Assembly: GCA_977016875.1 (NCBI GenBank)
Contig: CDRNST010000197.1
Span: 186,001-250,000 of the forward strand
Length of the DNA stretch: 64,000 nt
Direction of reading: 5' to 3'
Origin: Pavona decussata
Taxonomy: Eukaryota
The notes under the pieces were generated by a model, which made no database searches, had not been told where the DNA came from, and saw only the letters and a list, made by a program, of their open reading frames with translations. Numbering within the stretch: position 1 is the first letter of the stretch; every line of letters starts with the position of its first letter. A program made the position numbers and the translations under genes. Shown piece after piece: positions 8,237 to 28,996 of this stretch.

Positions 8237-8697
8237 GTAAGCATTTGTTTAGGCTTGTTATTCTTTTTTTTTCGGGTTTCAACACTTAAACACTTAATAT
8301 TTACCGTAAATAAAGCTTTTTAATACTACTAGACCATATTCATGAACATCCAACTGACTTCCCAACAAGAGTTGTGTCCTTGGGCTGATCGAGTTTCATA
8401 TGCATGGACACTGGTTGGAAACCTGTCGAACCTATCACAGGGACTGGAATGTTTACTTTAACTACCAATTCTACATGTTTCTCTTCTATGAACATTATTT
8501 TTGCCACAAAAGAGCGAATTACGATAAATAAAGAAGCAAATTGTGTTTATTCTTTTGTCTCAATGTCAAGAAGGTTTAAAATGGACATTTTAAGGCAACG
8601 TTCTGTGTATTCGAGTAGATAATGTACTTCTACCACATGCTGGGATTTTGTAACTCATTCAATAGCAGAGGTGTTAAAAGGTTCGTTTTATTTTCAG

Positions 8698-10178
8698 GGG
8701 GTTGCCAGGTAAAAGAAATGACAGCTGCTGATCTGCAAACAAGTGTGTGGCACCCACTCGCTTCTCAAGACGGCTTGCAGTATTTCTTTACTGTCGAAGC
8801 AACAAATGGAGCCGGCCTTAAACAATCAGTCTCTTCTGACGATATAATAATCGATACTTCTCCACCTGTGATAAGTGATATTTACCACGGCGCTGAAAAA
8901 GCAGAGAAAAATGCGGCTCACGTGATGTCTCAAAGTGTTGGTGACCAGTTAGCATTCTGTTGGGATAAGCCGTATGACGACGAGAGTGGAATTTTGTCTG
9001 TTAAATGGTGCGCAGGTACCAGCAACAACTCCTGTGACATCATATCGTTGACGTCTGTAGATCCAGGAGATGATTGTGTGAGATATTTCATGTCTAAATC
9101 GCTGACGTCTGGTACGATTGTGTTCATAATGCTGCTAGTCACAAATGGCGCAGGAATAACATCTGAGGTCGTCACCTCACCCCTGTTAATTGATACCACA
9201 CCGCCATCAGAAGGAAACGTGAACATTGGAAATACGGTCAAACTCAAGTATTTCAGAAAGGGGGATTTAATTAAAGCCGAATGGCGTGGTTTCGCTGACA
9301 ATGAGAGTCGTTTGAGCCACTTCGAGTGGGCTATCTGTCAAGTCAGTGCGAAAGACATATGTATTAGCCCATATGTTAACGCTGGAGGTAAGACGACAGT
9401 GGAGATCGACACCTTGGGTCTAAGATATGGAGTTTCATATGCTGTCATTGTCCGAGCCTTTAATAAGGTTGGACTTTTTAGTGAAGCAGCTTCGAGTCAG
9501 TTTATTTTAGATGGTACGAAACCATCTGCTGGAACTATATACGATGGATTACAGGGACGAAAAGATATAGAATTTCAAAGCTCTACCACAGAAATGTCTG
9601 CAAACTGGTCGCCATTTACTGACAGGAATGGAGAGATAGCTGAGTACGAGATGTGTATAGGCATAGAAGTAAGAGCATGTGACGTAAGCGACTTTGTTAG
9701 TATTGGCATCAATCTTAAAGGAACAGTGTCAGGGTTAAGGCTGAAGCACAACGAAAAATTCTTTATTACCGTACGAGCAACAACCGAGTCCGGCTACAGC
9801 CAAACCGCAACATCTAATGGCGTCAGAGTTGATAGCACTCCAGCTGTAACAGGAGAAGTCAGAGACGGACAGACACTCGCGGACATCGACTACCAGGCAG
9901 ATGACACGTACATCTATGCCAACTGGGACAACTTTCAGGATGAAGAATCAGACGTCACCGAGTACACATGGTGTGCCGGCACAGGAAAAGGAATATGTGA
10001 CATTGTTCCAGAAACCAACGTTGGAGATCGCACTAGCGCTAAACAGCAGATTGAACCTGCACTTCCTGAAGGAATAGAAATCTTCGTTACTGTTACCACC
10101 TTTAACAATGCAGGCGCCTCTACCTCGTCTTCTTCAGATGGGTTCAAAGTGGATAAATCTGTTCCTATCCTCTCAAAG
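8698..10178 (+). CDS. Giant protein exon (FN3-like repeats)
   Basis: Acceptor ttttcag|GG completes phase 1. Donor AAG|GTAACT, phase 0. Same repeat motif. Confidence 0.9.
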
Positions 10179-10508
10179 GTAACTAAAGTTGGCTAGAAAT
10201 GTCTCCACTGTTGTCTTACGTCTAGACCACTTTACGATATTTATGTAAATATTATATTTAGGTATTAGCGGGAGTGTCAATAATTAATGTAAGGTGTTTT
10301 ACTAGACTGATTTGAGCAATGCACTTTTCCTGTACTCTAAGAGCGTCGTGGGAAACAAGTTCTTGTAATATTTCATTTGTGTGGTGTCACGTTTTATCTT
10401 CAGGTCATTATATAACTTCTCAAGAGTGGAGGTTTGATTGTAAAAATGACGGGCTTAGGAGACTTTCTGATTTTGAATATTTTTCTGTTTACTCCTTATA
10501 TTCACCAG

Positions 10509-11151
10509 GTCCTGGACTTGCAGCTGGGTTTGGGCGATTCTGATGTTGACTACCTCACCGCAAAGGAAGAGTATTGCGTTAGCTGGGATGCCATGGATGC
10601 TGAGAGTGGCATACTAACAAGCAATGTTTCTGTCTGCTCTGAATTGAACAAGAACGACTGCCCACTGCACAGCCTTGAAGTCGGCAACCAAACGTCTGTC
10701 TGCATGTCTGATATGGAATTTAAAGAAGGTATCCGGTATGTGACGAAGGTTAGCACTGAGAACAACGTTGGGCTATCCACAGAGTTCTTCTCAGATGGCT
10801 TTGTAATTGACACTACTCCACCTGTAATGGGTGAGGTTTTATACCCTGATAAGCCGAAGACAACCGACGAGGAGACTGCAGAAACATTCACACATTCTGA
10901 AATTATTGTCCAGTGGAATGGGTTCTGGGACAAAGAAAGCGGTATTCGGACCACTTATGTTTGTGTTGGTACTCAGCCAGGACAGTGTAACATCAAGAAC
11001 TTTACAGATGCGAGAAATTCCACTTCGTACACCTTTGGAGACTTACCGCTTGTTCAAGGAAAGACGTACTTTGTCTCTGTCCAGGCTGAAAACAGAGCTG
11101 GTCTCAGAAGTGATGTGAAGACATCTGATGCGATTGTTGTTGACAAGACAG
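10509..11151 (+). CDS. Giant protein exon (FN3-like repeats)
   Basis: Acceptor ttcaccag|GTC, phase 0. Donor ACAG|GTGCAC, phase 1. Confidence 0.88.
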
Positions 11152-11509
11152 GTGCACAATTTCTCTCATGAGAAGATTGTTATTAGAGATTGTTACGATC
11201 TTGATAAACAGAGGCGCTGTTATAGATTCATACTTCGAACTGAGCCTTGTGATAATCAGGCAAAGAAAGAACATTACTTTGGCTTTGCGTTCTCCCTTTA
11301 CTTTCTGAGATTCACACTAGTACTCGTAACAAAGAATTGTAGTTCCTTTGCTTTGCTTTCAACAGGGTGAAGAGCGTTCTGATCTTCCATTTTATTGTTG
11401 CATTAAAGATATCTCGGTCCGTAGCATTTGAGGAATAGAATACTCGTCCTGCTTGAATAACGCTAGGGTAATCAGCTAACTGCCTGTTTGTGAACTTTTG
11501 TATTGGCAG

Positions 11510-12049
11510 GACCTATTAATGGAGGTGGAATACAAGCTGGAAGTGAGAGGGGTGGCGACATTGATGTTCAAGAAAGCCGAAGCCATATTGCAGCTTACTG
11601 GAATGCCTTTGAAGATCTGGAAAGTGACGTCATGAAAGTCACGTGGTGTGCGGGACTGTCTTCAGGTGATTGTGACCTCTTGAAAGAGACACAACTGACG
11701 CCAGATAGCACGTCTGTCCGTAAGGTCCTAACGCAGCCAATTAAGAATGGCCAGCAATACTATATCACCGTGACTGCAACAAATACTGCCGGCGTGACAA
11801 CTTCACTTACATCGAATGGCGTGACGGTTGACGATACTCCTCCAATTTCTGGTATCGTGATCGATGGAATTATCTCAGATGTGGATTACTTGAATGGCGA
11901 GGACGATATCAGTGCTAGCTGGTTTGGCTTTGAGGACTTAGAGTCCGGTATCGCGTCTTACGAAGTGGCCTTATGCGACACTAGGAACTTGTCATCCTGC
12001 CCGCAGCCCTTCGCTGGAGTTGGGAAAACAAAGAATGTCACTATCACAG
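11510..12049 (+). CDS. Giant protein exon (FN3-like repeats)
   Basis: Acceptor tggcag|GA. Donor ACAG|GTACAA, phase 1. The repeat continues across both junctions. Confidence 0.88.
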
Positions 12050-12085
12050 GTACAAATATCATTCGCGGCAGTTACCCCTGGCAAG

Positions 12086-12346
12086 TGTGGGAAGTGTGGC
12101 GCGATATGTTCGTTAATTCGATCACAGTTATTGATATCCATCTCCTAATTTTTAGCAATTGGACTATTTAGGACATTTTGTGGGAAGTGTGGCGTGATAT
12201 GTTTGTTAATTCGATCACAGTTATTGATGTCCATCTCCTAATTTTTAGCAATTGGACTATTTAGGACATTTTGTGGGAAGTGTGGCGTAATATGTTCGTT
12301 AATTCGATCACAGTTATTGATATCCATCTCCTTATTTTTAGCAATT
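12086..12346. repeat. Intronic tandem repeat, 93-bp unit, ~2.8 copies
   Basis: tgtgggaagtgtggcg recurs at 12086, 12179 and 12272 with near-identical units. Confidence 0.9.
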
Positions 12347-12595: not shown

Positions 12596-13242
12596 GTAAA
12601 TGCCAACGCTATGTTCATACGATTCATATGAATACGGCTGTGGAAGAATCTCTTTTAGAGCACGCGGACGAAACAGGTTCTTTTCTGCCGAGAAAATTCC
12701 AAGTACAAACCGTAAGATCCGAGAATTGTGGCATGTGGAAATGTTAATTAAGGTTTCACATGTTAAACGCTCCAAATCCTTAGCGATAGGTGATGAAAGT
12801 TCCCGCCTTGTCTTCAACGATTCATATATTTTTAAAAAGCAAAGCAAAAGCTACCAAACTACGTGACGTTTCGTTTTATCCGGTAATGACATGTCATTGT
12901 TCACTTGACTCAGTTGATGTTTCCATAGGAAACATAGCATTTTTTCCCTTATAATGGAAAATTTTTGACCGTAAAAAGTTTACATTTTCCGTTCATTTTA
13001 TAGTTTCTTAGAGCACAAATCTTAGCCCTAGTCCGAGGTTCAGTTACGATGTTTACCTTCACTTCAAAACTTCCATTAGTTATCCGAGCTTTTTGGATGG
13101 TAAAAGGAAAAGCCTTTGATAACCAATCACAAAGACGGGAACCGTGGTAAAAGTTAGGCTTGAATTGGAGTAGCATCCAACCATGGGCAGGTAAATGTAA
13201 TGACCCAATTCAATATTCCTCCCATTTATCACTTTATTGCAG

Positions 13243-16200
13243 CTGGATTCCTTTCATCGACTTCGAAAGTGGTATAGAAAGATATGAAGTTTGTTTAACT
13301 TCTGCTGCACAAAACTGCACAGTCACCAGTTTCATTGATGTTGGTTTGAACACAAGCTACGCGATAGATGGTCTTAACCTAACACATGGAAAAACATACT
13401 ACGCAATTGTGCGTGGTACAAATGGAATCAGACTCTCATCCGAGACGGCAACTAAAGGAACAATGATCGACTTGACGCCACCCTCTCTGAAGGATAATGA
13501 AGATTTGTTACCAAGGAGACCTCCTCCTACAAAACAACCACCCTCAACTAACATGACGTTCAACGCCTCGTCACCTCAAACAAGCAATCCGACATTGTCA
13601 AGAGTAAATCAAAGTATATCTCGAATCGCGTTCAGATGTTCCGAAGAACACCTAATGTCTAGCTGGGATAAGTTTGAAGATCTAGAGAGTGGAGTAGAAG
13701 AGTACAAATGGTGCGTTGGAACAGCAAAGGCTTCATGTGACGTGCTATCTTTAAGGTCTGTTAGATTGAGAACAAGGGATGCTGCTATTGTTCATAGACT
13801 TCGTTCAGGGGTAGTACTTTTCTCCACTGTATATGCTGTCAATAGAGTAAAGCTTAGACAGGAAATAGTATCAGATCCCTGCACCGTTATCACTGTGGCA
13901 CCCAAGTTAGCTGACGTCATTGACATATCAAGACTCAATACGAGCAATCTCACTGACATTGACTGGAAAGCTACTGTCCGAAGTTTGTCACTGAGTTGGA
14001 AAGTCATAGGAAAATATCTAAATGAAGTCTCACGCTTGCGTGTTCAAGTAGCCGTGACGTCCCTATCTTCTAACCTTTCTGTACCAAGACTCATTGAAGA
14101 CCAGTCCTGGGCCGGCGAGCCTCTTAAACAACCCTTTATGAACGTGCTGTCGTGGAAACGCAATGTTACGATTCAAAGCGTCCCTTTTCAATCTTGGAAC
14201 CGTTATCGCGGCGTAGTAAGGGTCTGGAACGAGGGCGATATCTACTCCGAGGCTGCCAGCGATGGAGTGAAACTGGAGCCAAGTCCTCCACCGAAACGTG
14301 GTCTTACAATCCGAGACAAAGCTGCTGAAAAGGAACATTTACGCTGGTGGCCGAATCTGAGGGTTCCTCCTCTTAATCTGAGTAGAGTAGACCCTGACAT
14401 AATATTTATATCATCTCCTGCGGATTTGAAGCTCGTGATCAGCAGTGGTGTCACAAATGAAACCTCTAACAAAACGGATTATATTTTCGATCATCATCTC
14501 TTTAGCCCAACGGCAGAATTTAAAATTGTTGTCAAGAAAGCTGTAAGTGGGGCGAATAATACGAACACAACCTTCCAGTCTAGAACAATGAAAGTCATCC
14601 CTGGTTTCTCTGACGTAGAGGGTCCTTGCTGTGCCAGAAAAGGAGCTGTGGCACCGTCAACATTAAGTGACACGCACTTCAAACCAGCGTTACCAACCGA
14701 AGACTTTGGTGTCTCTCTTGCGGTTTTACCGAATGAGAACGTGGCCATTGGATGTAAAGACAAGGTGATTATACAGTCCCTGAAAAGTCAAAGTGTTATC
14801 CAGTCTGTTGCGTCGGATAACCTCCTTGATCCAAGTGCAAGAGTTAAGATAGCCTCGCATAGAAACGGAACAGGTTTTCTGATCAATAGTAAAGTCCATC
14901 TCTACGAATATTTTGCAGGCAATAAGGACTTACATAAGACCATCGAAATCGGAAAATGCAAGAGCACTTCAAGTCCAGATTGCTCAAAAAATGAAACATG
15001 GGCGGATACCGTTGGTCAGGTGTTCGCTGTCAGTGACCACATAATTGCAGTAAATGGAAAAAATTCAACTTCAAATAACAGCGTCGTGGCTGTTTTCCGA
15101 AAGGCCGGTAAAGGGTGGACGTTTGAGCAAGCACTTGGGCAGGAAATGAAAGATCCACACTTTGGACAGTCAATAACTTTGAATAAACGTTTACTGGCCA
15201 TAGCTTCCGGAGAGGGAAAGAATTGTTGTGTTTTTATTTACTCTTTACCAACACTGGTTCTTCTGAATACAGTCTGTGTAGCTGAATCTTCAAACCACAC
15301 GGCACCGTTGTCGATACACCTTACTGAGACCGATGCGCTTGTGGTATTGTCCAGAACCCCAAGATTGCTGAAGGTATTCCAGATCAACTCCACATCACAC
15401 TCCCACCAAGTGGTCTGCCACTACGATTCCTGGGGCTATAACGAAGAGCTAAGCGGAAACATTGATGTAAACGTACGAGAGGAAGGTTTTATTATTGCCC
15501 TCGGCATCCAAACGGGAGATAAAAGCGATGAAGGTGTAAAGTTACTGGGCTTTCAAGGAACTTACTCTGACAAAGCAGATCAAAAGGGAGAATCTAGTGA
15601 ATGTGCCAACCTAGGAACAGTCCTCGCACGAAAAAGTGGATTACGAGTGGATGGGATGAGTACTCGAACATCAGTGTCGTTCAAAGGAAACAATATCTTA
15701 TTTGGATTGCCCGGTGTCCTTACGTGGCCTAAAAATGATCAGTGGCTTAGCACGGGGAAATTGTTTATGGCAACATATTGTCCCTTGGATCACTTTCGCT
15801 CTAGAGCTTCTGGAGTAGACAGTTTACGTCCCATAACTTGCCTGCCTTGCAAAAAAGGAAGAAAATCATTTGGAGGCTTTGCCGAAACTTGTACGGTGTG
15901 CGCAGGACGAATTTGTTCCCCAATCAATGATTCGTCCATCTTCACGTCAGATATTTGTGATGACGTTTCTTGTGTTTCTACGTCGGTTGCAAATCTCAGC
16001 ACAAATGGAATCAACCTTCACTTAAAGAATGGCTCGTTCTTCTTCCCAGGGTCCGAAAACGTCTACACCGTCGAGTTTATTGAAACTACACGAGCTGGCC
16101 AATCAACAGGTTCTCTTTCAGAATCGTTCGTTATCGACCCGACATCTCCCGAAGTTGGAGTCGTTTACGACGGACTCGGTAGTGACCAAAACATGAACTG

Positions 16201-16594
16201 TTCCCAGAATACGACATTTGGGGAGGACAGTCAGTGCTCCACTCGAAATTTTGAAGACACGGATGTGAATTTTACCAACAACACACGAGAGATTCACGCA
16301 AGATGGATTGACTTCTTGGATAACGAAAGTGGCATTGTAGAGTATTTCTGGTGTGTAGGAACTCAGCCGATGAAAGATGACATCCGGGTGTGCGAAAGTA
16401 CCGGAATGAGACCAAACGGAAGTCATTATGGACTAACTTTACAGCATGGTGATTCCTATTACGTCACAGTTATTGCCTGCAATGGAGCCCGGATGTGCGC
16501 AGCTGTGCCCAGTGACGGTGTTACCATAGACACCACACCGCCTGACATGACATATGTCAGAGATGGAGTCATGGGGCCAGATATGGACTATCAG
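13243..16594 (+). CDS. Giant protein exon: FN3-like repeats, Pro/Thr linker, inserted beta-propeller-like and Cys-rich modules
   Basis: Acceptor ttgcag|C gives S-WIPFIDFESG. Donor CAG|GTAGGG, phase 0. FG-GAP-like motifs EDFGVSLAV and PHFGQSITL; Cys-rich CP...CLPC...GG...CTVC. Confidence 0.88.
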
Positions 16595-16842
16595 GTAGGG
16601 AGACTCGAGCTCTTGAGTTTGACAACATAGATGAGACATTATTTGCGCTATAAATCGAATGTCATTATCCATTCTTTCTCATATTTTTAACGTTGCGTTT
16701 AAAACCTAAATTTCGAAGTGAAGGAAAATGTGGCGTTCTTTAAACTAAATTTAATTATATTATTTGTCCAGCTCTTCGTGCGTTTAGGAACTATTCTTTG
16801 AGATCGTTAATTGGAAATCTTAATGTTTTGCATTGGTGGCAG

Positions 16843-17346
16843 GTTTTTTTGGATATTATTTTTGCCTACTATTCTGCGAGCGACCCAGACAGTGGAGTGA
16901 CGTCATACGAAGTGGCATGGGGAACTGCGCCGGGTTTAGTTGATGTATCAGGCTTTCAAGAAGTCATGAACACTACAGTATGGCGCGCCAAACTCACAGA
17001 TGGTGCTCTCGAGGCCGGGAAAAGGTACTACGCAACCGTGAGAGCAACAAATGGGGCTGGTCTGCAATCAGAAAGGCTATCTTCTAATGGCATCATAGTC
17101 GGAAAATCAGAATACGTCTTCGACAATTCTTCGACAGGGTCGTTTTTCTTCGATAGTGTCAATGTCAAAGACGATGGAACTCGCAAGGATGAAGGAGTAG
17201 GACAGACATACGGGACATTGAGTGTACCCAAGGGAGCTGTGAAAGAAGAAATGAAGCTGCGGTGTTACAGTTTGGACGAAACGACGCTAAGTTCCAACAA
17301 GACTGACGAGGGTCCTGTTAGTAATCCAACTAAGACAAGACCAAAG
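16843..17346 (+). CDS. Giant protein exon: last FN3-like repeat and start of a ZU5-like domain (GTLSVPKGAV)
   Basis: Acceptor ggcag|GTT, donor AAG|GTAT, phase 0 at both ends. Confidence 0.85.
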
Positions 17347-17467
17347 GTATAAAATAAGTACGAGGTACAGCGGGATTTAAAAATGAGTTATAACTGTTTG
17401 TTACCTAAACCTGACGGGATTAAACGATTCACATTAAAACATCTGGATAGAGAAGTAATGTGGCATT

Positions 17468-17615
17468 AAGGGTTTCAGGTGCTGCGTTGATTGGGAATGA
17501 AAACGAATGTTTGGTGTTATCAATAGAGTTAGGTAATTTGGACACCGTAAGAGATTCCTGACGTTTTGGGCGTTAGCCCTTCGTCAGAACGGATTCGTTC
17601 ATCAACCAAACATTC
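17468..17615 (-). mobile_element. 148-bp Penelope-like insertion carrying a degenerate minimal hammerhead ribozyme motif
   Basis: 13-bp direct repeat GTAATGTGGCATT at 17455-17467 and 17616-17628. Minus strand 17558-17587 reads CTGACGA-AGGGCTAACGCCC-AAAACGTCAG. Internal inverted repeat cgaatgtttggt/accaaacattcg. Confidence 0.65.
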
Positions 17616-17942
17616 GTAATGTGGCATTCCGTCTCTTGTTTTTTAAAGAATACAAAAACTAGCGCAAAAAACCAACCAGCTTCTGAACAAAATCGTCACA
17701 CACTCTAGCCAGTTCTTCCTTTCCTGGTAGTACCAGTGTGCCCACTGCGAAAAGAAAACACTAAGTCCTGCTAAGCATGGAGAAGAAGAGTCATTATTAT
17801 GGTGACAGGGGAGAGAGGAAGAGCCGCCCCTCTTGACGTAAAGTGGTATAAGGGCTTCCCCGTTGACCACGTTACTTTTGTATGTTCTTTTTATAATCAT
17901 CGTCGTCATCATCATCATTATCATTTTTTTTTTTTGCGACAG

Positions 17943-18160
17943 CAATTTATGCTAGGAAACTACAGTTTCCAGATCAAAGCTTTGGATCCAGTGAACAACA
18001 CTGTCCAAGAAGGATACCAGTTTGTTAAGCCAATCAAAATATCCATGTTCTATGATGTTGGCAACCTGGTACAAGCCAATCAAAAGCACGTTAACAACGA
18101 ACTGACCAAGGAAGACGTAGATCCGGTGTTGTATCTTTGGGATCCAGAAAATGAAACCTG
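17943..18160 (+). CDS. Giant protein exon: ZU5/GAIN-like domain core (YQFVKPIKISMFY...PVLYLWDPENETW)
   Basis: Poly-T tract then gacag|CAA. Donor TG|GTTAGT, phase 2. Confidence 0.85.
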
Positions 18161-18698
18161 GTTAGTATGCTTTTCCTTATGGCTGAAATAATACGGATCT
18201 TGGTAGAACTGTGGTGAACTGCGAGCTGACTTATTTGTACGACAAGAATGACAATATGAGCATACCTCCTTTGTGGCCATACCCTCTTACAATTTTATAT
18301 CGTTTGAATGCAAGGCCGTTAAGTTACATCAAACATTGGGGGAAAAACGATTTCCAACTTTACTTACAAAACATAGACCATGCAAGGGAAAATGAAAGGT
18401 CTATCCTGATAAGGAATATTGCTGGAATGCCTTCCTATCTAGATAACTCTTCTCTTGTACACGACTCCGATTACCACGTTCAACCTAAAAAAAAATTAAA
18501 TAAGTAAATAAATAAACGTCTCACTGAAAATATGACATAAATTTCGTACCAGTCATCGAAACGTATAGAAACCAGTTCAAGTTTGTCTCTGGGATTATCG
18601 CCTGCATCCATGTTGGTGAAATATAGAGCCTCATGTTTTCTTCAATCACTGATTAGTTAGAAATTAACAACACTGCGGTCCATCCTCGTATCTTTTAG

Positions 18699-18853
18699 GT
18701 TTGACGCGGCCCTCACTTGTCCAGAACCTTGGAGTCACGTGAACCGTTCGATTAAGTTGCTGACAGTTAACGTATGCCACCTGACTCAATTTGCGTTTTT
18801 CTGGTCTTTCATTGCAAAACACGGCTTGGTCCTGTTCGACAAGAATCATTCAA
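18699..18853 (+). CDS. Giant protein exon missed by the ORF track, encoding the GPS-like motif (W)FDAALTCPEPWSHVNRSIKLLTVNVCHLTQFAFFWSF
   Basis: Acceptor tcttttag|G completes TGG. Donor A|GTAAGT, phase 1. Frame is open throughout. Confidence 0.85.
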
Positions 18854-20706
18854 GTAAGTAATAAAGATTGTGCATTTCAGACCATTCCTCCCCGAAAAGC
18901 TGGAATACTGGAGCACCTTAAACTACAGCGACCACAACTTAAATTTCGTTTCCTCCCAAATTTGGACTAACTCCCTATCGTTTTATAAATCACGGCTTAA
19001 TGCAGTAGTGAAAGAAATTAAGCACTTGCTTCACAGTTCAAATTATAATTTACAAGCTACACTGCTTTCATCACTAAATACAAAATAAGGACAAATTATC
19101 TAGAGAACTACAAAGTACTCTCAGCTCTAAAACAATTTAGGAAAAAATGCTCCCCTGACCAAAATATCCCTCCCTTTAAAAAACTTGCCGAAAACCTCAT
19201 TTCATCAAAGAAAGTCGGCCAAAAAAATACCAATATATTGTCAGAAGAAAGGCATTCACGCCAGTGAAAAGTCAAGGAAAGTGACTTTCTGAAGATGTAA
19301 TTTCAAACGTATAAGTGAACTGCGAAAATGCTTACAAGCTTCTCTTCCTATGTACTGTGGAACAAAACTAAGAGTCTTTCAGTTTAAGTTTATTCATGAA
19401 ATGCAATCAAAGGGCAAGTGCATGGATACAGTGTGTTTGAAAAACCGCTAGACAAAACCGTAGCCACTGAAGATGTTTTTAAATCCGTTACACGAAACGC
19501 TACAATCAAATTCCAGTTGTTTTTACTCACTCGTGTTACAAAAAGTGAATTTGTTGTGCCCTTTTCTAAAAATGAGTATGGATTGTTCCATTTCATCATA
19601 AGTTTAAGGGTTGCTCTCCTACACTATAAATGTTATGACGCCTACCCCCGGGACAATTGCCCGGGCGATGTACACTGCAAGATCATGTTAGTCGTGTTTA
19701 TGAATATTCAAAATTGTCATTGTCTAGCCAAATGCTCTTCTGTGATAACTTATGTCTTCTTCGCTAGCCGAGCCTTACCTTTGTTCTGTCCATGGTCTTT
19801 CCTTTGTTTCAATGCCAACCATTTTGCATAATTAGCACGCGCCAATCCCTTAGCAGAAGAATACGTCTCTCGTTCTTTTGTCTTCGCAATTGTCTGGTCT
19901 CCCTTTCGTTGGTGGCCCTTAGCAATTGCTTCCTTTTGTCCCTTGCTTTGCGCAACTTTCTTTTTTCCTCTATTTAACTTTCGCGCGACTTTCATGGCAT
20001 GATCAATCACATTTTCGGAAGGACGCGCTTTCCTCTCGTTCCCTCTAAACAGTACCGTAATACAATTCCGCAATCGCGGTTCAGATGACTTGTATGTGTG
20101 CCCGCGCTTCCATACAGCGATACTCATTATCCAAATTCGAATAGGCAGCAGTTTATTACAAAACAATAGAAAACATTTGCTGGGAAAGCTTTGTTCCGGA
20201 AGTGAATGTACGACAAATAGATCTAAAGGATGGCAATTAGTTTGTGAGCTTTGTGCACGGGACATAGAGGAGTCCCATCTAACGGTATTGAGGCTAACAT
20301 TTTCTTCACCGTGCAATTGCAGCGAAATTCGCGCAAATCGATGTTGTTGATTCATTACAAAACAAAGTAAGTGGCCAAACAAAGCGTCACACGATCGACG
20401 ACGCGTACCTTTTATATGGGTATATATTTATATTTTTGATCGGCGTGATCAATTTGCGATGCAATCACACGGCACCTCTCATTAGACGGTACGTACATAA
20501 GCACCGGCATGCGGCAGGCTTATGTAGTTCGAATTTATTTTCGCCATCTTGTTATATGAGTAGTAATACGGTAATTTTGTGTCGAGTTACGATATTCAAA
20601 AATCACTGTCCAGATCGCAAAGAAAGAAGTGAGAATAACATGAGCCGTTCGTTCATTGTATGACATATTGAATGAGATAACAGACACCTTAGGGAACCAC
20701 AAAGAT

Positions 20707-21465
20707 TTAATCCCTGCGTGAAGTCGTAGTTGCAGTAGACTTCACTTGTGTCCCCTCATGTGCGCAGCAGGGATCTCCTTCTTCACCTCGCCCGACGTAC
20801 ATGTCGGCCACTCTGTGGCATTTGGGTAGGTAGGGATAGGCTGCGTTCAAAAATGACTTCTTAACTGAACTCCTTACAACACTAGTACGATCACTGCATC
20901 CACCTTTCTCTTCAAACGTCTGGTAGACTCTTTCCTCAGCTTCTACTTCAGAGATCTTAGCTCTTAGGCTGAATTGCTTTTGATCTTGTTTCAATTGTAA
21001 CTGCCTTCGTTTCAATTCTAAACCGTCATTCAAAACTTGTACACGAGCCATTAAAGCTGCCTTTCTAGCTGTGGCCTTGAACCTCGCACTGGATGCGGTA
21101 GTCGAAGAGGACTTCTTTGTACTCTGACTAGCTTGGCTAATGCTATCTTCTAGATCTACATTGTCTTCTAAGCAATCACTTGACAGGTCTAATGCACATG
21201 CCACACTCACGCGGTGCTCTGCCAATTTTAATACCTCGCTGCAATTGTACTCAGCTTCAACATAATGCGTTTGGGCCCGGGGAACCTCTTCCGATATACC
21301 AGCCCCCTCCAACAAGTCTATAAGTTTAACATTACAATAAAACAAATTTCCAAGAGCAGCCCTAACCTCTTTAATCCTTCTCCGGACACGATCGACACTC
21401 GCTCCCTTGTCTGAAAAAGCTGAAAAAATACGAAATGAAACAGCTCGCAAACCGGGCATAAACAA
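20707..21465 (-). mobile_element. Degenerate BEL/Pao-type LTR retrotransposon gag N-terminal remnant
   Basis: DSISQAS...SSSTTASSARFKATARKAALMAR followed by a coiled-coil, a pattern typical of BEL/Pao gag N-termini. No pol region present. Confidence 0.5.
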
Positions 21466-22446
21466 ATACAGAAATACTTACAACCGGCTGAAATAAGCGG
21501 TAAAAATGTAAACTCACATATATTTGGGCATCCTGCCGCCTGTCTCTCCAAATCGAGTCATAAAAAGCGAACAAACTACGCTACATAGCAAAGGTACAAA
21601 CTGCCCGAAGCACATGGTCTCACAAAAAAACATCGCGTGACCCACACAAGGGAGGTACGGAAGGGCGCATGACAACAAACTGTCCCTAAGACAGTAAGGC
21701 AGACTGAAACGCATTTATTCTTTTTGTACTTTTTTTCTTTCTTTATGTAATTAGATTTTATTGATCTTAGTATTTTTGCAGTTTTGTAATCTGCAGTTAT
21801 TGTAATTGTTAGCTATCATTTGGCCTTTTTTACTGCATTGTCATTGTATTATTTTGTGGTGTTGTAAAGTATTACATTGTAAATAAAAAACACACAGCAT
21901 TGTAAAAAAATACAGATTATGCTACAATTGACGGATTTAGTATGATCTTCTTACTTAGTAAAGTTATCAAATCGGCGAAGTGTCCCATCACCTCGCAGCC
22001 TTTCACGGGGTTTGTGTACCCTAAGATGGCATGCCACTTCTTATCAGAGTTAACCTAACATTTTGCTCGATTTTCCTAACTGTTCGCTGGGACAAATTCG
22101 TAGACCTGAGAAGAAATAGGAATTGTGAAAAACGTTTCTTGTCAAAGAAAACCACTCGGCATGCCGCCTCCCCCTCGAAGCAATACTAGTCGAAAAAAGT
22201 CTGTTTATCTTCCGATATATGTTAACTTCTCATCGAACAGATAATTGCCTGTATTTTCCATATCAGAACGCCTTGAAATTGTAAAAATTTCTTTTTTTTT
22301 TTTTTTTAATACTCAACTTTATTTCAATTCTACGTCATGTTAACATTCCTTTCATTTAAGTATTTTTTTTTTACATTTATATTTGATGAGTGATAACACA
22401 TATGTATATATGCAAAGTAAAACAAACGTACAAACAGTATTATATA

Positions 22447-22709
22447 CAGCTGTTTCGACAAAGGTTGTCGAAAAAAAGCACAAAAGCGTACGCAACAATG
22501 CCAAAAGGTAATCCGGGAAATACCCCGGCAATAAATTTCAAGAAAAGCTCAGAATCCATAATGCTTCGACCGTACAGCGAAGACTTGAGATGGCGGGCAA
22601 TATGGATTCTGGGCTTTTCTTGAAATTTATTGGGTATTTCACAGACTACCGTTCGGCATTGTCGCGTACGCTTTGACGCTTTTTTGGACAACCTTTGTGG
22701 AAACAGCTG
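22447..22709. mobile_element. Palindromic MITE, TA target-site duplication (Tc1/mariner-type)
   Basis: TA|CAGCTGTTTCgACAAAGGTTGTC ... GACAACCTTTGTgGAAACAGCTG|TA. Internal arms aataaatttcaagaaaagctcagaatccata / tatggattctgggcttttcttgaaatttatt. Confidence 0.85.
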
Positions 22710-22744
22710 TATACAGCCGAGGAAAATTAAAAGATTACAATTTA

Positions 22745-22905
22745 NNNNNNNNNNNNNNNNNNNNNNNNNNNNNNNNNNNNNNNNNNNNNNNNNNNNNNNN
22801 NNNNNNNNNNNNNNNNNNNNNNNNNNNNNNNNNNNNNNNNNNNNNNNNNNNNNNNNNNNNNNNNNNNNNNNNNNNNNNNNNNNNNNNNNNNNNNNNNNNN
22901 NNNNN
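22745..22905. other. Assembly gap (N run)
   Basis: 161 N bases. Confidence 1.
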
Positions 22906-22919
22906 CATCATGCTAACTA

Positions 22920-23440
22920 ATTCTGTTAAAAATTAAAAATCGTATAAAAGTTATTCTAAAGGACTAATCGAGATATGCTCTTTTAAAAAGGAGAGTCTTA
23001 AGTTTCCGTTTAAAAATGTTAAGACTGTGTTCCTTCCTGAGTTCTAGAGGTAGTCCATTCCACAATCGAGGAGCCGCAGTAGCGAAGGCTCGGTCCCCGA
23101 GGGTGGGCAGCGTTTTAACTGCCAGTGGTTTGAGCGTATAGTTATCATTGGATCTCAAACCATAACTGGAGTTCGGCTTCAATGTGATTAAGTCCCGTAT
23201 ATATTTTGGGGCGGTGCCATGGAGAGCTTTATATGTGATTAAAATTATTTTGAAATAAATTCTATGTTTAATATTTAGCCAATGAAGTTCAGTTAATAAT
23301 GGGGTGATATGACAGTATCTAGGAGCTCTAAAAATTAGTCTTGCCGCTGAATTCTGTAGGCGTTGTAGTTTATAAACAAGGCTGTTTGGTAGCCCATACA
23401 ACAGAGAATTGCAATAATCCAAGCGACTAGTGACGAATGC
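22920..23440 (-). mobile_element. CR1/L2-group LINE, 5'-truncated 3' fragment
   Basis: DYCNSLLYGLP...LQRLQNSAARLI...HITPLL..LHWL...GDRAF..AAPRLWNGLP, the C-terminal RT-associated region of L2/CR1 ORF2. Confidence 0.85.
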
Positions 23441-23517
23441 TTCTACGGAAGGCTACTTAGACGCAAAAAAACCTAATAGCTACAATTACGATTGCTTGTA
23501 CTTCAATTAGAGCATTG

Positions 23518-26500
23518 ATCAACTACCTATAACACTGATTAACTTTTTCCATTTTTTTAAATGATAAGTTAATTTATCTCTTTTCCTGGCAATATGGAGC
23601 TCAATAGAATAAACTCTCTTCGTTTTGGCAATGAACCCCTTTTAAGGAAGGCTTGGCGTTTTGGCATTTCCGAGAATAAATATAGTATTTACCCAACAAG
23701 AGAATATGATTGATTACAGGAAAAGAGTAGGTGCTCGATGGATTCGTCCTCTTTTTGGCAGAAAGTACATAGCGGTGATTGCGTAATGCCAAACTGAAAG
23801 AGCTTTTCATTTGTAAAAACAATTCGATTTAGAACTTTGTACTGAAATTCTCTTGATTTAGAGTCCATGGACGAGCAGAAGGATAAAGAATAGACCTTCT
23901 CCCAATCGACAGCAGAGTGTGGGTATTTGTCAGACAATTTCTTTTGAGCAGTAGGCACTTCCTGCTTCTTCCCTGGAACTGGCGATAAATTTGTTTAGAA
24001 GAGACATCAAAAATTTTTAAAGAACTCCCATCAACAGTGATGGTGGGAACATCTGGAACTGGAAAAACTATTGGTAGAAATGAAGCTTCTTTTATTATCG
24101 TGCGCCAATGAACTGGGATGGAGTCAATGATACTCATCACAAAAAAACGTTGCTCAGGATTGAGCAGTAGATTCGTAAAGCTAAATGCTGTACCGTTACC
24201 CGAGATTAAATCCCCTAATTTTAAGAGGCCAATGGTAAAAAGATCCCTTCTAAAAAACGATTTTTTGTCAACACAAAGAAACTTATTGTTCCATACAATT
24301 TGATTCGCAACCTCTTGAAACGAAAGTGGTGTATTGTTGTTCATATCAGACCAGGAATCGAAGCACTTTTCATAGAAGGGCGGCAATGTTACTCTTAACT
24401 TGGTAGTATCGAAATTGCAATGAAGTACAAATTTACCACCCACAGATAACAGACGTTCATCGAGGAAGAACTTCCAAGGACTAGGATAATCTTCCAAATA
24501 TTTCTTTAAACAGGAAACACGTTTTGTACAAATCATTGAGTCAATATCGAGCATGTTTAAGCCACCACTCTCAATGGTGGAGGTGAGAACATTTCTTTTA
24601 ACTTTATCTTTGCCATTCCAGATGAAATTGAAGAAAATGGAATTCGCATTTTTTATAAGTTCTTTAGAAATAGGTATTGCTGATGCCCTGAACATAAATT
24701 TGGGAATCGCGAAGGTTTTAACTATCTGTATCCTCCCTAAAAGTGACAAGCCTCTCCATTTCCATAGATTTAAAGATTTCTTTATCGCCTTTAAAGTTTC
24801 CCTAAAATTTAAGTCGTCCCTTTCTTTATCGTTACCACCGAAATAGATTCCCAGAATTTTTATAACATTGCGAAGGTTGTGCATGTTAGATAAATCTTCC
24901 CATATAGAACTGTCACCAAAGGCTAAGGCTTCTGTCTTCTCATGATTGACTTTCAACCCCGAGCACTCCCCAAAGTCGTCGAGGAGGCGAAATAGGCTGG
25001 TATAAGACCTTTTGTCTTTCAGAAAACATGTCATATCGTCAGCGAATAAGTTGAGCTTTACATTAACTTCACCAATTTTAAAGCCTTGAATGGAATCGTC
25101 GTTTCTTATCCTAATCGCCAAGACCTCTAATGCGATTATAAAAAGATAAGGAGAGAGAGGGTCACCTTGTCTTACCCCTCTTCCTAATGAGAAAGGCCCT
25201 GTTGAAAAACCATTGTTCATCACACAACTTGAGGCATTTTTATACAGCACGCGTATCCACTGGATAAAACTAGGTCCTAAATTAAATTCGTGTAATATTC
25301 TTATTAAATAATTGAAATTAAGAGTGTCAAAAGCTTTCTCAAAGTCAACGGCTACTAAAATTCCAGACAAGCCTTTCTGTTTAGTATGCTCTATTACATC
25401 TTCTATCGTTCTGATCGCATCGAAAATCGTTCTTCCTTTGACAAACGCATTCTGATTGTAGTGAATAATTTCAGGAAGAGTCTTTTCCAAACGTTTTGCT
25501 AGAGCTTTTGACGCTATTTTCGCATCCACATTTATAAGAGATATTGGACGCCAGTTCTTTATCAATCTTTTATCCTTCCCTTTCTTTTCAATTAAGGTTA
25601 TAATAGCCTGTTTCTGTGAATTAGAAAGTTCTCCATACTCAAATGCATGATTTAAACTATCGACTAGCAATGCTCCAATAAGAGGCCAAAAGGCAATATA
25701 GAACTCTACAGTTAAACCGTCATTTCCTGGAGATTTATTCTTTTGGAAAGACCTCAACACATTATAGCACTCTCCATATCCTAGTTTTCCTTCGCAAATA
25801 TTTCTCAGATTTTCAGGCAATTTTGGAATTTGATTTGATTTGCTAATAAATGTAGATATGGCATCCGAGTTTGCACAACTATTTCCATCATAAAGACTCG
25901 AGTAATAAGACTCTAATTCATTCATAATTTTTTGGGGGTCGTGTGTCAATGATCCCTCACTTGTAAAAACTTTTCTTACGCTGGTTTTCTTTTTATTAGA
26001 ATTTTCAAGATTGAGAAAGTATTTATTGTTCCTCTCACCCATTTCGTACCAAGTCGCACGAGAGCGTATGATAGCTCCCTGTGTAATAAAGTCGTACAAG
26101 TTCTCATATTCTGCTTCTAGAGATTCCAGTTCCTCAAAATTTTGAGGAGGGGTCCTTGTCACATTTATGAGAGCATTCTTTTATACATTCCTCAACCTCT
26201 TGCAATTTTGCTTTTCTTTCGCGAGCTTTACTTTTACTATACTCAATAGTACACTGACGTATTCTATATTTAACTAAATCCCACAGAACTCGTTTATCCA
26301 AAACCTCCTTAAATTCCTCTAACCAAACATTATAATTTGCGCTAATTAGTTGACAGTAATCTGAATCGGTATCAATGTCCACTTGCAGACAATCGCTGAC
26401 CAGCCAGTAATCTAGACGTCTTTGGATAATTGGTGTTTTTTGGCGCCATGTAAGCCTTGTATCGGTAGGATTGCGAATGCGCCAAATATCTATTAAGTCG

Positions 26501-27045
26501 TGTTCTACACACATTTCTTCGACAAATTTAGCAGACTCTTTCCTCTTCTTGTTCCCTCCCCGCCCGTCTAAAACCTCGTCAAGAGTTACGTTAAAAACGC
26601 CTCCGACAATGAGATATGAATCACATTCTGCTGTCAAAGACTTAATTTCTTCTGAAATATTTTGAAAATATTGAATTTGCTCGCTGCACTTATTTGGAGC
26701 GTAAATATTCAGAAGACAATAACGCGAATCCTGTATAATTGCGTCCAACGTAATGAAACGGCCTTCAGGGTCTGTCTTAATTGTTTGCAAATTAAAATCC
26801 AAATTGTTCTTTACAAGCACCAAAACTCCTTTGTTATGGCATGTTCCATGAGAAAAAAACAAATCACCCCTCCACTGTTTCTTCCAAATATTTTCCACGT
26901 CACGAGTACTATAAGTTTCCTGCAAGAAACAAATTTCCGCGCCAGATTTACTGAGCCAATTGAATATGGCTTTCCGCTTTTCAAAGGTACGAATCCCTCG
27001 AACATTTAAGGACAATAATTTAAAATTAACATTGCTAGGCCCCAT
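23518..27045 (-). pseudogene. L1/Tx1 ORF2 (EN-RT-zinc knuckle), frameshifted
   Basis: Split across track ORFs 26134..27066, 23829..26162, 23689..23958 and 23601..23822. The end of the EN domain appears deleted (DIDT/DSDY junction). Confidence 0.88.
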
Positions 27046-27486
27046 GTGACTGAGAGAAAAAGACAATAGTACAATGGAAAAAGCTGAACAAAAAAAAAAC
27101 AGTTTTGTTTAAAAAATACTAATGAAGTAACAATGACAACTAAGAATTGAGGATGTAAATCAGATTTTGACACGTCCAAATAGCCATCAGCGAAAACAAG
27201 AGAAAAAAACGCAAACAGAAACAATATACGTAAACAATTGCACAAGGAAACAAAATTTAAATTTAAATTTAAGAGGGCAACAAAGAAAAATATCCCGAGT
27301 GCTGCCCTTGAGAGTGGAACTCGTATCGAATAAGAAAGCCTGACCAGTCTTGGCCGCTTAATCAGCTAGGCCGGTAAAGGCTCCACTGCACCTTATTATA
27401 GTATTATAATAGAGTAGACTGAAACGCAGCTTATCTAAAGAATAATTCTAAATAGCATAATATTCAAACAATAAACAGTTCAAAGT

Positions 27487-28376
27487 TTATGAAACAACCT
27501 TTCCGTTAATTATTAGCTTGTCGGGTTCTGATTTACTAAAGGATACCCTTAGCCCTTTCTCCTTGGCTTCTTTGAGCTTTGGCATCTTCTTGCGCCTCTT
27601 CTCGATTATTATTTGTGGAAAATCTTGAAGTATCATATATTCAGTGTCTTTTAGTTCGAAGCCTTGGCTGAGAATTCTTTCTCGATCTTGGAACCGCAAA
27701 AAGCGTGCAAGAATTGGCCTGGGTTTACCATTGATGGACTTACCGACCCGGTGTACGCGCTGGATCTCTATAGTGTTACTTGGGTCATGGAAGCCGAGCG
27801 CCGTTTCCAAAAAATGGTTTAGGACCGTCCTTGTGTCAAGGGCTTCACCGCCTTCTACAGCGTTGACTTCTTTCTCTGGAATGCCAAAGAACTTCAGGTT
27901 TTCACGCCGACTGTACGATTCAAGATAGAGATGCTTCATGTGTAGCTCGTTGATCTGCTTTTCCTTTTCCGTGAGTTTACCTCGCAGCGCGGATACTTCG
28001 TCATTTAAATTAGTGAGCCCAGCGTCCATTGTGTCGATCTTCGAATCCATCTTGCGTGTCTCACTTTCCAATTTCTCCACAGTCGTTTCTGTCCTGGCAA
28101 GTCTAGAAGAAATGTCCCTCAAGATAGATCAATGGCATCCAGTTTCTCTCGTTTCTTTAGAGTCATATCCAGTACTGGTTTAATGTCCTGGTTATCCGGT
28201 GTGTTTGTCATATCGCGAACCGTTTCTTCTTCGATCTCAGCGACTTCAATTTCACACCTTCCGAGGTCGCTTTTCTTAGTTTTGGAACGTTTATCTTTCG
28301 GTGAACTCGATTCTGTGGAACTCGTACTACTTCTCTCGGATCTAGTGCGCTTTGATGATATATTTGTCTTTTCCAT
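27487..28376 (-). pseudogene. L1/Tx1 ORF1 RNA-binding protein, one frameshift near 28125
   Basis: Track ORFs 28119..28523 (from MEKTN) and 27487..28122 join into a basic N-terminus, coiled-coil, RRM and CTD. Confidence 0.8.
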
Positions 28377-28550
28377 TAAAAGGCTACGCTCAAAAATTAA
28401 AAAAAGGCCGCGTCGGGGCGGAGCCTTGCAAGACACGACTATTTGGCAGCCATGCTCGTTCCATGCTCGTTTCTCTACGTTACATTGCTGTTGAATTATA
28501 TTGCCAATGATTATGGTGTTCACTCATAACTTATTTTTCCTTTCTGATAG

Positions 28551-28996
28551 TGTACGATTCAGATGGGGACATCAGAGTAAAGCGGGGACAAAAAGTTACT
28601 AAACTGGAAATTACCGTTCGCCGATCCAAAGGTTCCCAAGGTGACATCACAGTGCATTGGTCTCTGTATCACACTGATGACTCGTCAGAGAGCGCTGATC
28701 TTATATGGCCATCATCTGGGACAGTGTCCATGACTGACGGCCAGTGGAGTGAATCGTTCATTGTAAATGTCGCCAACAACAGAAAGGAAGTGCCCGAAAG
28801 CGTGGTCTTTGTGCAACTCGAAGATGCCACGGGTGGGGCTTTGTTAGCTTCCAGGGACGAGACAACCGCAATGATCGTGATTGCTTCGAACATGAGGAAC
28901 GACCATGGTGCGTTGATTATCACTGAGGTCAGCGTTTGTGATTGCACTACTAACAGTTTCCGTTGTCGTGAATGCACAAAGAAGGAAAAGAAGACG
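28551..28996 (+). CDS. Giant protein exon: Calx-beta domain plus transmembrane helix (frameshift at ~28917-28935)
   Basis: Acceptor tttctgatag|TG matches phase 1. Calx-beta signature TVRRSKGSQGDITVHW...SGTVSMTDGQ...F-x-V-x-V...VFVQL-x-DATGGALL...TAMIVI. The +1 frame reads AFVIALLTVSVVVNAQRRKRRR. Donor CG|GTAAGT. Confidence 0.8.

Follow-up and report, generated by a model that had tools for sequence, protein, structure and literature searches.

In Zhang, Aravind et al. 2012 (PMC3482391), ZU5, GPS and the autoproteolytic domain of Nup98 are united as the 'ZU5 superfamily', and ZU5 autopeptidases are described from polymorphic toxins, together with related ZU5 domains in large bacterial surface proteins carrying adhesion modules; the relation among GAIN-B, ZU5 and Nup98 is also the subject of Liao et al. 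2014, as cited in PMC9539791 and PMC11697300. For GAIN, cleavage is reported to need all 320 residues of the domain, and there are two disulfides, C801-C832 and C820-C834 in latrophilin-1 (PMC3321182). Here we describe a ZU5-like domain encoded in a 64,000-nucleotide stretch of the stony coral Pavona decussata (assembly GCA_977016875.1, contig CDRNST010000197.1, positions 186,001 to 250,000; this whole stretch is called the window below). By structural modelling, it is a β-sandwich of about 200 residues belonging to the ZU5 superfamily (ZU5, GAIN subdomain B, FIIND and Nup98-C). It forms the membrane-proximal module of a giant (>5,000 aa), FN3-rich type I cell-surface protein and ends in a hairpin with a candidate site of self-cleavage.

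The plus strand of the window holds one giant gene, in which the open exons are all built of FN3-like repeats. The region of the ZU5-like domain is organised as follows:

16798-17346, plus strand: open exon with the last FN3-like module and the start of the ZU5-like domain
16798..17103, plus strand: FN3-like module, the last of many in the ectodomain (Pfam fn3 E 0.0015, under the cut-off)
17104..17346, plus strand: E1, the part of this exon that belongs to the ZU5-like domain, with the first strands, the VPKGAV strand (equivalent of the ZU5 'IPxGA') and a variable loop
17347..17942, plus strand: intron 1, bounded by GT..AG; a (CAT)n-like simple repeat and a repeated element lie within it
17943..18160, plus strand: E2, with the core strands FMLGNYSF and F.KPI.ISMFY and with LYLWDPENETW (acceptor AG 17941-2, donor GT 18161)
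18161..18698, plus strand: intron 2 (GT..AG, phase 2), across which a Trp codon is split
18699..18853, plus strand: E3, encoding DAALTC, the final two strands and their CHLTQFAFF hairpin (acceptor AG 18697-8, donor GTAAGT 18854)
18775..18786, plus strand: Cys-His-Leu-Thr codons, with the predicted scissile bond between Leu (18781-18783) and Thr (18784-18786)
18854..28550, plus strand: intron 3, 9.7 kb, with a retrotransposon of the long interspersed nuclear element (LINE) type inside, on the minus strand
28551..28990, plus strand: next exon, with a β-rich module and then the membrane-anchor region (tblastn to residues 1530-1657 of the Montipora foliosa protein P0047)

E1 ends at a phase-0 GT donor at 17347 and aligns to residues 1325-1405 of P0047. 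The joints 17346>17943 and 18160>18699, with GT..AG ends, were present in transcript contigs from two runs of two studies, with no intron depth, and one contig (run X1) passed from 18853 directly into 28551 onward, which is the next exon. The NCBI models for Stylophora LOC111337483 (P0009) and for M. foliosa P0047 include these three pieces in matching order, with CHLTQFAFF. The three-exon structure with GT..AG borders is thus confirmed by spliced contigs and by two NCBI coral gene models, and with it the exons and translations quoted in the original prediction, which had been made from the sequence alone. That prediction let the domain run from 17200; the domain is real, but its start lies some 100 bases upstream of this, near 17104 (KSEYVF...), since two strands of the structural model come before the VPKGAV strand. 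It was also correct that E3 is missing from the track of open reading frames (ORFs), being too short for the default track, yet the exon falls within a 40-aa ORF at 18739-18861.

Searches of the window were run exon by exon, and the spliced Montipora domain (P0047:1325-1535), which is 67-86% identical to the window when compared exon by exon, was used as a proxy for folding and for the large database search. A full HMMER search with this domain against 1.84 billion representative proteins gave 163 matches at E <= 1e-3, comprising coral exon fragments, eukaryotic proteins and bacterial proteins. The eukaryotic members are 300-8,000 residues long and include proteins of the sea anemone Actinostola and the stramenopile Cantina marsupialis, with further ones coming from marine metatranscriptomes and metagenomes. 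Usually they have one hydrophobic helix 100-1,000 residues past the motif, and K319L-like PKD, TSP1 or EGF modules stand between the two.

An alignment of 56 family sequences revealed four invariant columns (F90, C161, C180 and H181), with P42, F108, P111, L144, W154, A157, L182 and F185 conserved at 90% or more. Both ends of the domain were conserved, [IV]PxGAV near the start and W..A..TC...[IV]CHL[TS]xF[AG] at the end, and only two cysteines were invariant, so that the ZU5-like beginning, the GPS-like end and the reduced cysteine set first read from the coral sequence are properties of the family. Conservation of HLT in homologues had been set beforehand as a test of the prediction: C-H-[L/F]-[T/S]-x-F was kept in 107 of the 109 instances that cover the site (L in 102 and F in 5 at the third position, T in 94 and S in 13 at the fourth, F in 101 at the last), and the two exceptions, CQFS and CRLS, are internal extra copies in two bacterial proteins. 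Because 107/109 homologous instances carry C-H-[L/F]-[T/S], a chance occurrence of the motif was rejected.

One eukaryote-like member from a JGI metagenome (P0183, 2125 aa) reads CHFTQF at the motif, which is followed after 270-430 residues by four or more hydrophobic segments, an arrangement that suggests a multi-pass membrane protein; Pfam found nothing in the region of these segments.

The AlphaFold2 model of the 211-residue domain, built on the family alignment, had a predicted local distance difference test score (pLDDT) of 88.5 and a predicted template modelling score of 0.82. The model is a β-structure with three short helices, and H181-L182-T183 lies at the turn joining strand 174-181 to the final strand, 184-191. 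With Foldseek against the PDB, ankyrin ZU5, UNC5b and the GAIN domains of BAI2, BAI3, CELSR1 and CD97 were retrieved at E 8e-5 to 1e-2. VIA-align was then applied to the Foldseek list and, independently, to 48,161 representative PDB chains, and the two runs ranked alike: ankyrin ZU5 came first (Z 11.0-11.8 over 130-142 residues, at a root-mean-square deviation of about 3 A), followed by the GAIN domains of CD97 (Z 9.2), BAI3 (Z 8.7), Gpr126 (Z 8.4) and CELSR1 (Z 8.3), the ZU5 domains of ZO-1 (Z 7.5) and UNC5b (Z 7.0), and the FIIND of NLRP1 (Z up to 7.0) and CARD8 (Z 6.2-6.4), with the first unrelated folds at Z 5.6-5.7. The top 19 of the 48,161 representatives (Z 5.8-11.4) were ZU5, GAIN, FIIND or axonemal doublet-microtubule chains. 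The ZU5/GAIN fold that had been anticipated is therefore supported by Foldseek and by both VIA-align searches, all ranking ZU5, GAIN and FIIND above background. An Atlas search by shape found the fold in many bacterial and archaeal surface proteins, including SpvB/ZU5 proteins and surface proteins of Chloroflexota.

It was also noticed that the axonemal doublet-microtubule chains 9fqr_Hn, 8glv_AE, 9y6s_9f/9K and 8j07_k3 (from mammals, Chlamydomonas and Leishmania) matched the model at Z 6.4-9.0; a ZU5-like sandwich is probably present in these proteins as well. Scores from the Atlas feature search were low (0.79-0.81), to a HYDIN fragment and to ZU5, and are leads and not evidence.

The register of the site was examined on chains that stop at a cleavage site. 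The cleaved N-terminal chains of GPR56 (end 382) and human NLRP1 (end 1212), ends that we take to be the P1 residues (L382|T383 and F1212|S1213), aligned up to model residue 182, and the alignments of GPR110, GPR97, Gpr126 and ADGRL3 chains stopping at the cleavage site likewise reached residue 182. In uncleaved BAI3, the alignment ended with 192 opposite 866, placing L182/T183 on L856/S857 if the last strand is ungapped; L856 is the cleavage-site residue according to Arac et al. (PMC3321182), and S857 was deduced as the residue after it. Since the cleaved chains end opposite residue 182 and the BAI3 register points to the same place, L182|T183 of the model coincides in position with the bond that is cut in GAIN and FIIND.

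Comparison of profiles by hhalign gave a probability of 91.6% (E 8e-7, 132 columns, mostly the IPxGA and F.KP[IV] strands) against the ZU5 exons of the coral itself, and of 41% (E 2.8e-4, 43 columns) against its GPS exons, with the Trp, the Cys of ..[GT]C and HLTxFA aligned. With the ZU5 domains of ankyrin, UNC5 and ZO-1, the best structural match, the coral domain shares an IPxGA-like strand near the start, the F.KP[IV] core strand and a catalytic-type H-[F/L]-[S/T] in the last hairpin, the ZU5 of PIDD autocleaving at HFS; it differs from them in being extracellular instead of cytoplasmic, in having no UPA or death domain after it, in its conserved Cys pair, in carrying HLT, as in GPS, instead of HFS, and in lying outside Pfam PF00791. 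With GAIN-B/GPS of adhesion G-protein-coupled receptors (GPCRs) and polycystin-1, it has in common the extracellular, membrane-proximal position, the W...W...C...C-HLT pattern and HL|T-x-FA in the hairpin before the last strand, in line with the Z of 8.3-9.2 for CD97, BAI3, Gpr126 and CELSR1. Unlike GAIN, however, it has no helical subdomain A but an FN3-like module directly before it, one predicted disulfide (C161, C180) and not two, with a Cys shifted by one residue, and about 140 residues followed by a single transmembrane helix in place of a directly adjoining bundle of seven or eleven transmembrane helices (7TM or 11TM); its family also occurs in bacteria, whereas GAIN has been described from Tetrahymena to mammals (PMC3321182). 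FIIND (ZU5-UPA) of NLRP1 and CARD8 resembles it in fold (Z 5.1-7.0) and, for the NLRP1 chain ending at F1212, in the register given above, but is cytoplasmic, has an SF|S motif and is followed by UPA-CARD. The SEA domain of mucins is a functional analogue only, a self-cleaving juxtamembrane module of giant surface glycoproteins whose halves stay associated until they are pulled apart; its fold and motif (G|SVVV) are unrelated to those of the coral domain. The profile and structure comparisons therefore define a distinct family of the ZU5 superfamily that is on the whole closer to ZU5 than to GAIN, carries a catalytic hairpin of the GPS type and has no GAIN subdomain A. The designation as an 'intermediate' ZU5/GAIN domain in the original prediction is apt as a description, but the domain is nearer ZU5 and lacks subdomain A, and the evolutionary position that the word implies is not established.

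The bacterial members belong to Chloroflexota (Caldilineaceae, Promineifilaceae, Anaerolineae and Ardenticatenaceae), and in the search of 1.8 billion proteins the coral domain reached them at E 9e-8 to 2e-4. An even sample of 301 genomes from this phylum included 31 with a match at E <= 1e-5. The Chloroflexota proteins always carry it as their final domain: the motif stands 20-27 residues short of the C-terminus and is followed by a putative sorting motif, the YLP-box (NCBIfam NF053834), for which the bacterial protein P0232 scored 11.9 bits (cut-off 10). An alignment of 16 bacterial sequences had a YLPxxxR-like tail, with L129 conserved at 90% or more and P130 invariant, and the bacterial consensus of the domain end reads W[VI]DAATTC...[VI].ICHL[TS]EFALF. 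The original prediction had likened the coral sequence to a C-terminal domain of secreted bacterial proteins; with these significant matches that resemblance is verified and traced to Chloroflexota. The N-terminal parts of the proteins are highly varied (solute-binding protein, Ycf48-like propeller, PKD, Reg_prop and DUF11). The polymorphic-toxin ZU5 domains (PMC3482391) are N-terminal and associated with SpvB/RHS, whereas the Chloroflexota copies stand last before the YLP-box. Exon-by-exon Pfam scans of the window gave nothing relevant, and NCBIfam found only the YLP-box and missed the domain itself.

We consider it likely, by analogy with GAIN, that the domain cleaves itself at L|T. The main argument for reading the site as catalytic is that His and Thr/Ser in a predicted surface hairpin are near-invariant from bacteria to corals. 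Cleavage would proceed as cis-autoproteolysis in the manner of GAIN (H836/L837/T838 of latrophilin-1): His181 would act as general base and deprotonate the hydroxyl of Thr183, which would attack the carbonyl of Leu182 (N-to-O acyl shift), and the ester would then be hydrolysed. A predicted conserved disulfide, from the Cys of ..TC.. to the Cys before His, probably pins the hairpin. The expected products are an N-terminal fragment ending in ...VCHL and a C-terminal fragment starting with TQFAFF... Because the cleaved last strand (TQFAFFWSF) would remain buried in the sandwich, the giant FN3 ectodomain would be held non-covalently on a fragment made of this strand, the β module, the transmembrane helix and the tail, from which force or unfolding could detach it. 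The corresponding fragment in Chloroflexota would consist of the strand and the YLP-box only. As functional consequence we infer shedding, a mechanical fuse or the exposure of a tethered strand.

Several observations weigh against the assignment or against cleavage. Cleavage is absent from many ZU5 domains (those of ankyrin, UNC5 and ZO-1) and from some GAIN domains. Pfam ZU5 (PF00791) had no match to the spliced Montipora domain at E up to 10 and none in the 56 family members at E up to 1, Pfam GPS (PF01825) matched neither the Montipora domain nor these 56 members, and a Pfam scan of the coral's own genome located 39 ZU5 and 69 GPS loci, this domain not being among them. Neither a single-sequence search of the PDB nor one with the profile of 56 sequences retrieved ZU5 or GAIN. 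Against a smaller, cleaner ZU5 set (six long open frames), the hhalign probability fell to 63% (E 7e-5), and the C-terminal motif was mis-registered, HFS not being placed on HLT. In the alignment to GPS, the family Cys that precedes His meets the last GPS Cys only if a gap of one residue is introduced, and the family Cys pair fits latrophilin-1 C820-C834 (PMC3321182) only approximately; the hairpin may have a geometry different from that of GPS, because this Cys is one residue closer to His than in C-x-C-x-HLT. Finally, the window copy may be anchored unlike the other copies, because its membrane anchor reads out of frame, as described below.

It is unlikely, in our judgement, that the domain is a non-cleaving adhesion or scaffold module of the ZU5 fold, in which C-H-L-T-x-F would be kept for partner binding or for folding, as a disulfide-pinned hairpin with buried Leu and Phe. 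Such a role would accord with the best structural matches, which are to the non-cleaving ankyrin ZU5, with the two internal bacterial copies that are still kept although their motif has lost the His, and with BAI3, which has RLS and was uncleaved in the crystal structure (PMC3321182). Packing alone, however, hardly explains an invariant His and a position restricted to Thr or Ser from Chloroflexota to corals, and the same residues are the catalytic pair of the GAIN and ZU5 autopeptidases at the matching structural position.

The second alternative concerns the copy in the window. In the Montipora protein, the domain (about 1325-1535) is followed by a β-rich module of about 110 residues, one transmembrane helix and a tail of about 210 residues, and in both this protein and the one paralogue in the Pavona genome, about 140 residues separate the domain from the single transmembrane helix. 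The paralogue (contig C125) has 81% identity in E2 and 86% in E3, keeps CHLTQFAF and has an intact transmembrane helix (8154-8609, minus strand of its locus). In the window copy, the membrane-anchor region at 28900-28990 is out of frame, reading ...ALIITEVSV and then CDCTTNSF..., and a +1 shift yields FVIALLTVSVVV followed by a basic stop-transfer sequence. The frameshift may be genuine, may come from the assembly or may lead to a secreted form; the identity of the domain is unaffected. Between the domain exons of the window and of the paralogue, the nonsynonymous divergence (dN) is 0.07-0.11, while the synonymous divergence (dS) is saturated, from which the duplication is judged to be old and the domain to have been under purifying selection since.

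That the window copy is a decaying duplicate, in which the motif would be a functionless relic, is a quite improbable reading. The frame lost at the start of the membrane helix would fit decay, as would the lower identity of its β-module exon to Montipora (52%, versus 64% for the paralogue) and the LINE in the 9.7-kb intron. But the copy is transcribed and correctly spliced into the next exon, all of its large upstream exons are open, the low dN with saturated dS of its domain exons speaks for constraint, and the frame loss could be an assembly error or give a secreted form; moreover, decay would bear on this copy and say nothing of what the domain is.

That the domain is a true, if divergent, GAIN domain of the adhesion GPCR/PKD1 family proper is very improbable: HLTxFA, two Trp and two Cys are reminiscent of GPS, hhalign sets HLT on HLT and GAIN structures score Z 8-9, but ZU5 outscores GAIN, the model is all-β with short helices, and a true GAIN domain was rejected because each of four defining features is missing, namely a match to the Pfam GPS model (which locates 69 other loci in the genome), the helical subdomain A (an FN3-like module stands directly before the domain), the two disulfides (there is one Cys pair only) and an adjoining 7TM or 11TM region (about 140 residues and a single transmembrane helix follow).

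The β-rich module after the ZU5-like domain is Calx-beta-like by eye, a likeness that is unconfirmed. Pfam, including Calx-beta (PF03160), was silent on it, the sole phmmer match in the PDB was a weak one to an NCX1 chain (3us9, E 0.88), and its AlphaFold2 model was poor (pLDDT 52).

Upstream of the domain, the ectodomain is encoded by the following open exons:

7-8289, plus strand: open exon of 2760 aa, FN3-like repeats
8622-10196, 10434-11171 and 11503-12171, plus strand: open exons, FN3-like repeats
13160-16630, plus strand: open exon of 1156 aa, FN3-like repeats

These upstream exons match Pfam fn3 with a best E of 3e-15. The protein of the 1156-aa exon had ENA matches of up to 93% identity, with 64% to Stylophora pistillata and 57% to M. 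foliosa. Among its FN3-like modules, FG-x-S/FG-GAP-like repeats (e.g. FGQSITLN and FGVSLAVL) were noticed, a pattern that suggests a β-propeller within the ectodomain; Pfam gave only a weak fn3 match on this exon.

In intron 1, the summed depth of RNA contigs was very high, up to about 14,000, at 17440-17590 and 17884-17957. One of these peaks lies at the CAT/ATC simple repeat and the other at the short repeated element, and many loose ends at the peaks suggest that further copies occur in other transcripts or at other places of the genome. Intron 3 matched Pfam RVT_1 (E 1.6e-37) and Exo_endo_phos (E 5e-8), and its retrotransposon comprises:

19750-28523, minus strand: LINE-type retrotransposon inside the 9.7-kb intron
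23829-26162, minus strand: reverse transcriptase ORF of the LINE
26134-27066, minus strand: endonuclease/exonuclease/phosphatase ORF of the LINE
27487-28122, minus strand: coiled-coil ORF of the LINE

On the same contig, outside the window, the minus strand at 62437-117946 has a run of about 18 matches to Calx-beta (Pfam PF03160), of which about 11 exceed the cut-off; they indicate another giant gene, of Calx-beta repeats, which lies upstream of the window by some 70-120 kb.

The motif strings CHLTQF, HLTQFA and CHLTEF did not occur in the full-text literature library searched, and a 2026 consortium review of adhesion GPCRs makes no mention of ZU5 or prokaryotes. Judged by Pfam, NCBIfam and the literature text, the latter including the main text of PMC3482391, the family appears to be uncatalogued; new in it appear to be the HLT-x-FA motif, the single predicted disulfide, the spread over corals, protists and Chloroflexota, and the pairing with the YLP-box. 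The finding is nevertheless an extension and not a new principle, because a ZU5/GPS/Nup98 superfamily with bacterial roots has already been published. Liao, Pei, Cheng and Grishin reportedly argued likewise, in 2014, that GAIN-B, ZU5 and Nup98 are related.

It is conceivable, although we regard it as doubtful, that the GAIN-B ancestor has its closest living relative in the CHL[T/S]xF[A/G] family, so that a complete GPS-type catalytic hairpin with its disulfide would have existed on a bare ZU5 sandwich in surface proteins of Chloroflexota and entered eukaryotes before subdomain A and the 7TM were added. If this were true, cleavage in bacteria would leave a strand of about 20 residues with the YLP-box, and the mature bacterial protein would be held on the cell by a non-covalently bound strand only, that is, a prokaryotic 'tethered strand' anchor. 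For Chloroflexota, an uncatalogued C-terminal domain is now linked to the YLP-box sorting signal, and the family as a whole provides a concrete outgroup against which the origin of GAIN-B could be dated. If the domain cleaves, it would be the smallest natural GPS-type HL|T context, with about 190 residues, one disulfide and no subdomain A, and hence a manageable system in which to study activation of the scissile bond by the fold, a matter still argued for GAIN. For the biology of corals, cleavage would mean that a giant FN3-rich surface protein is a two-chain molecule separable by force.

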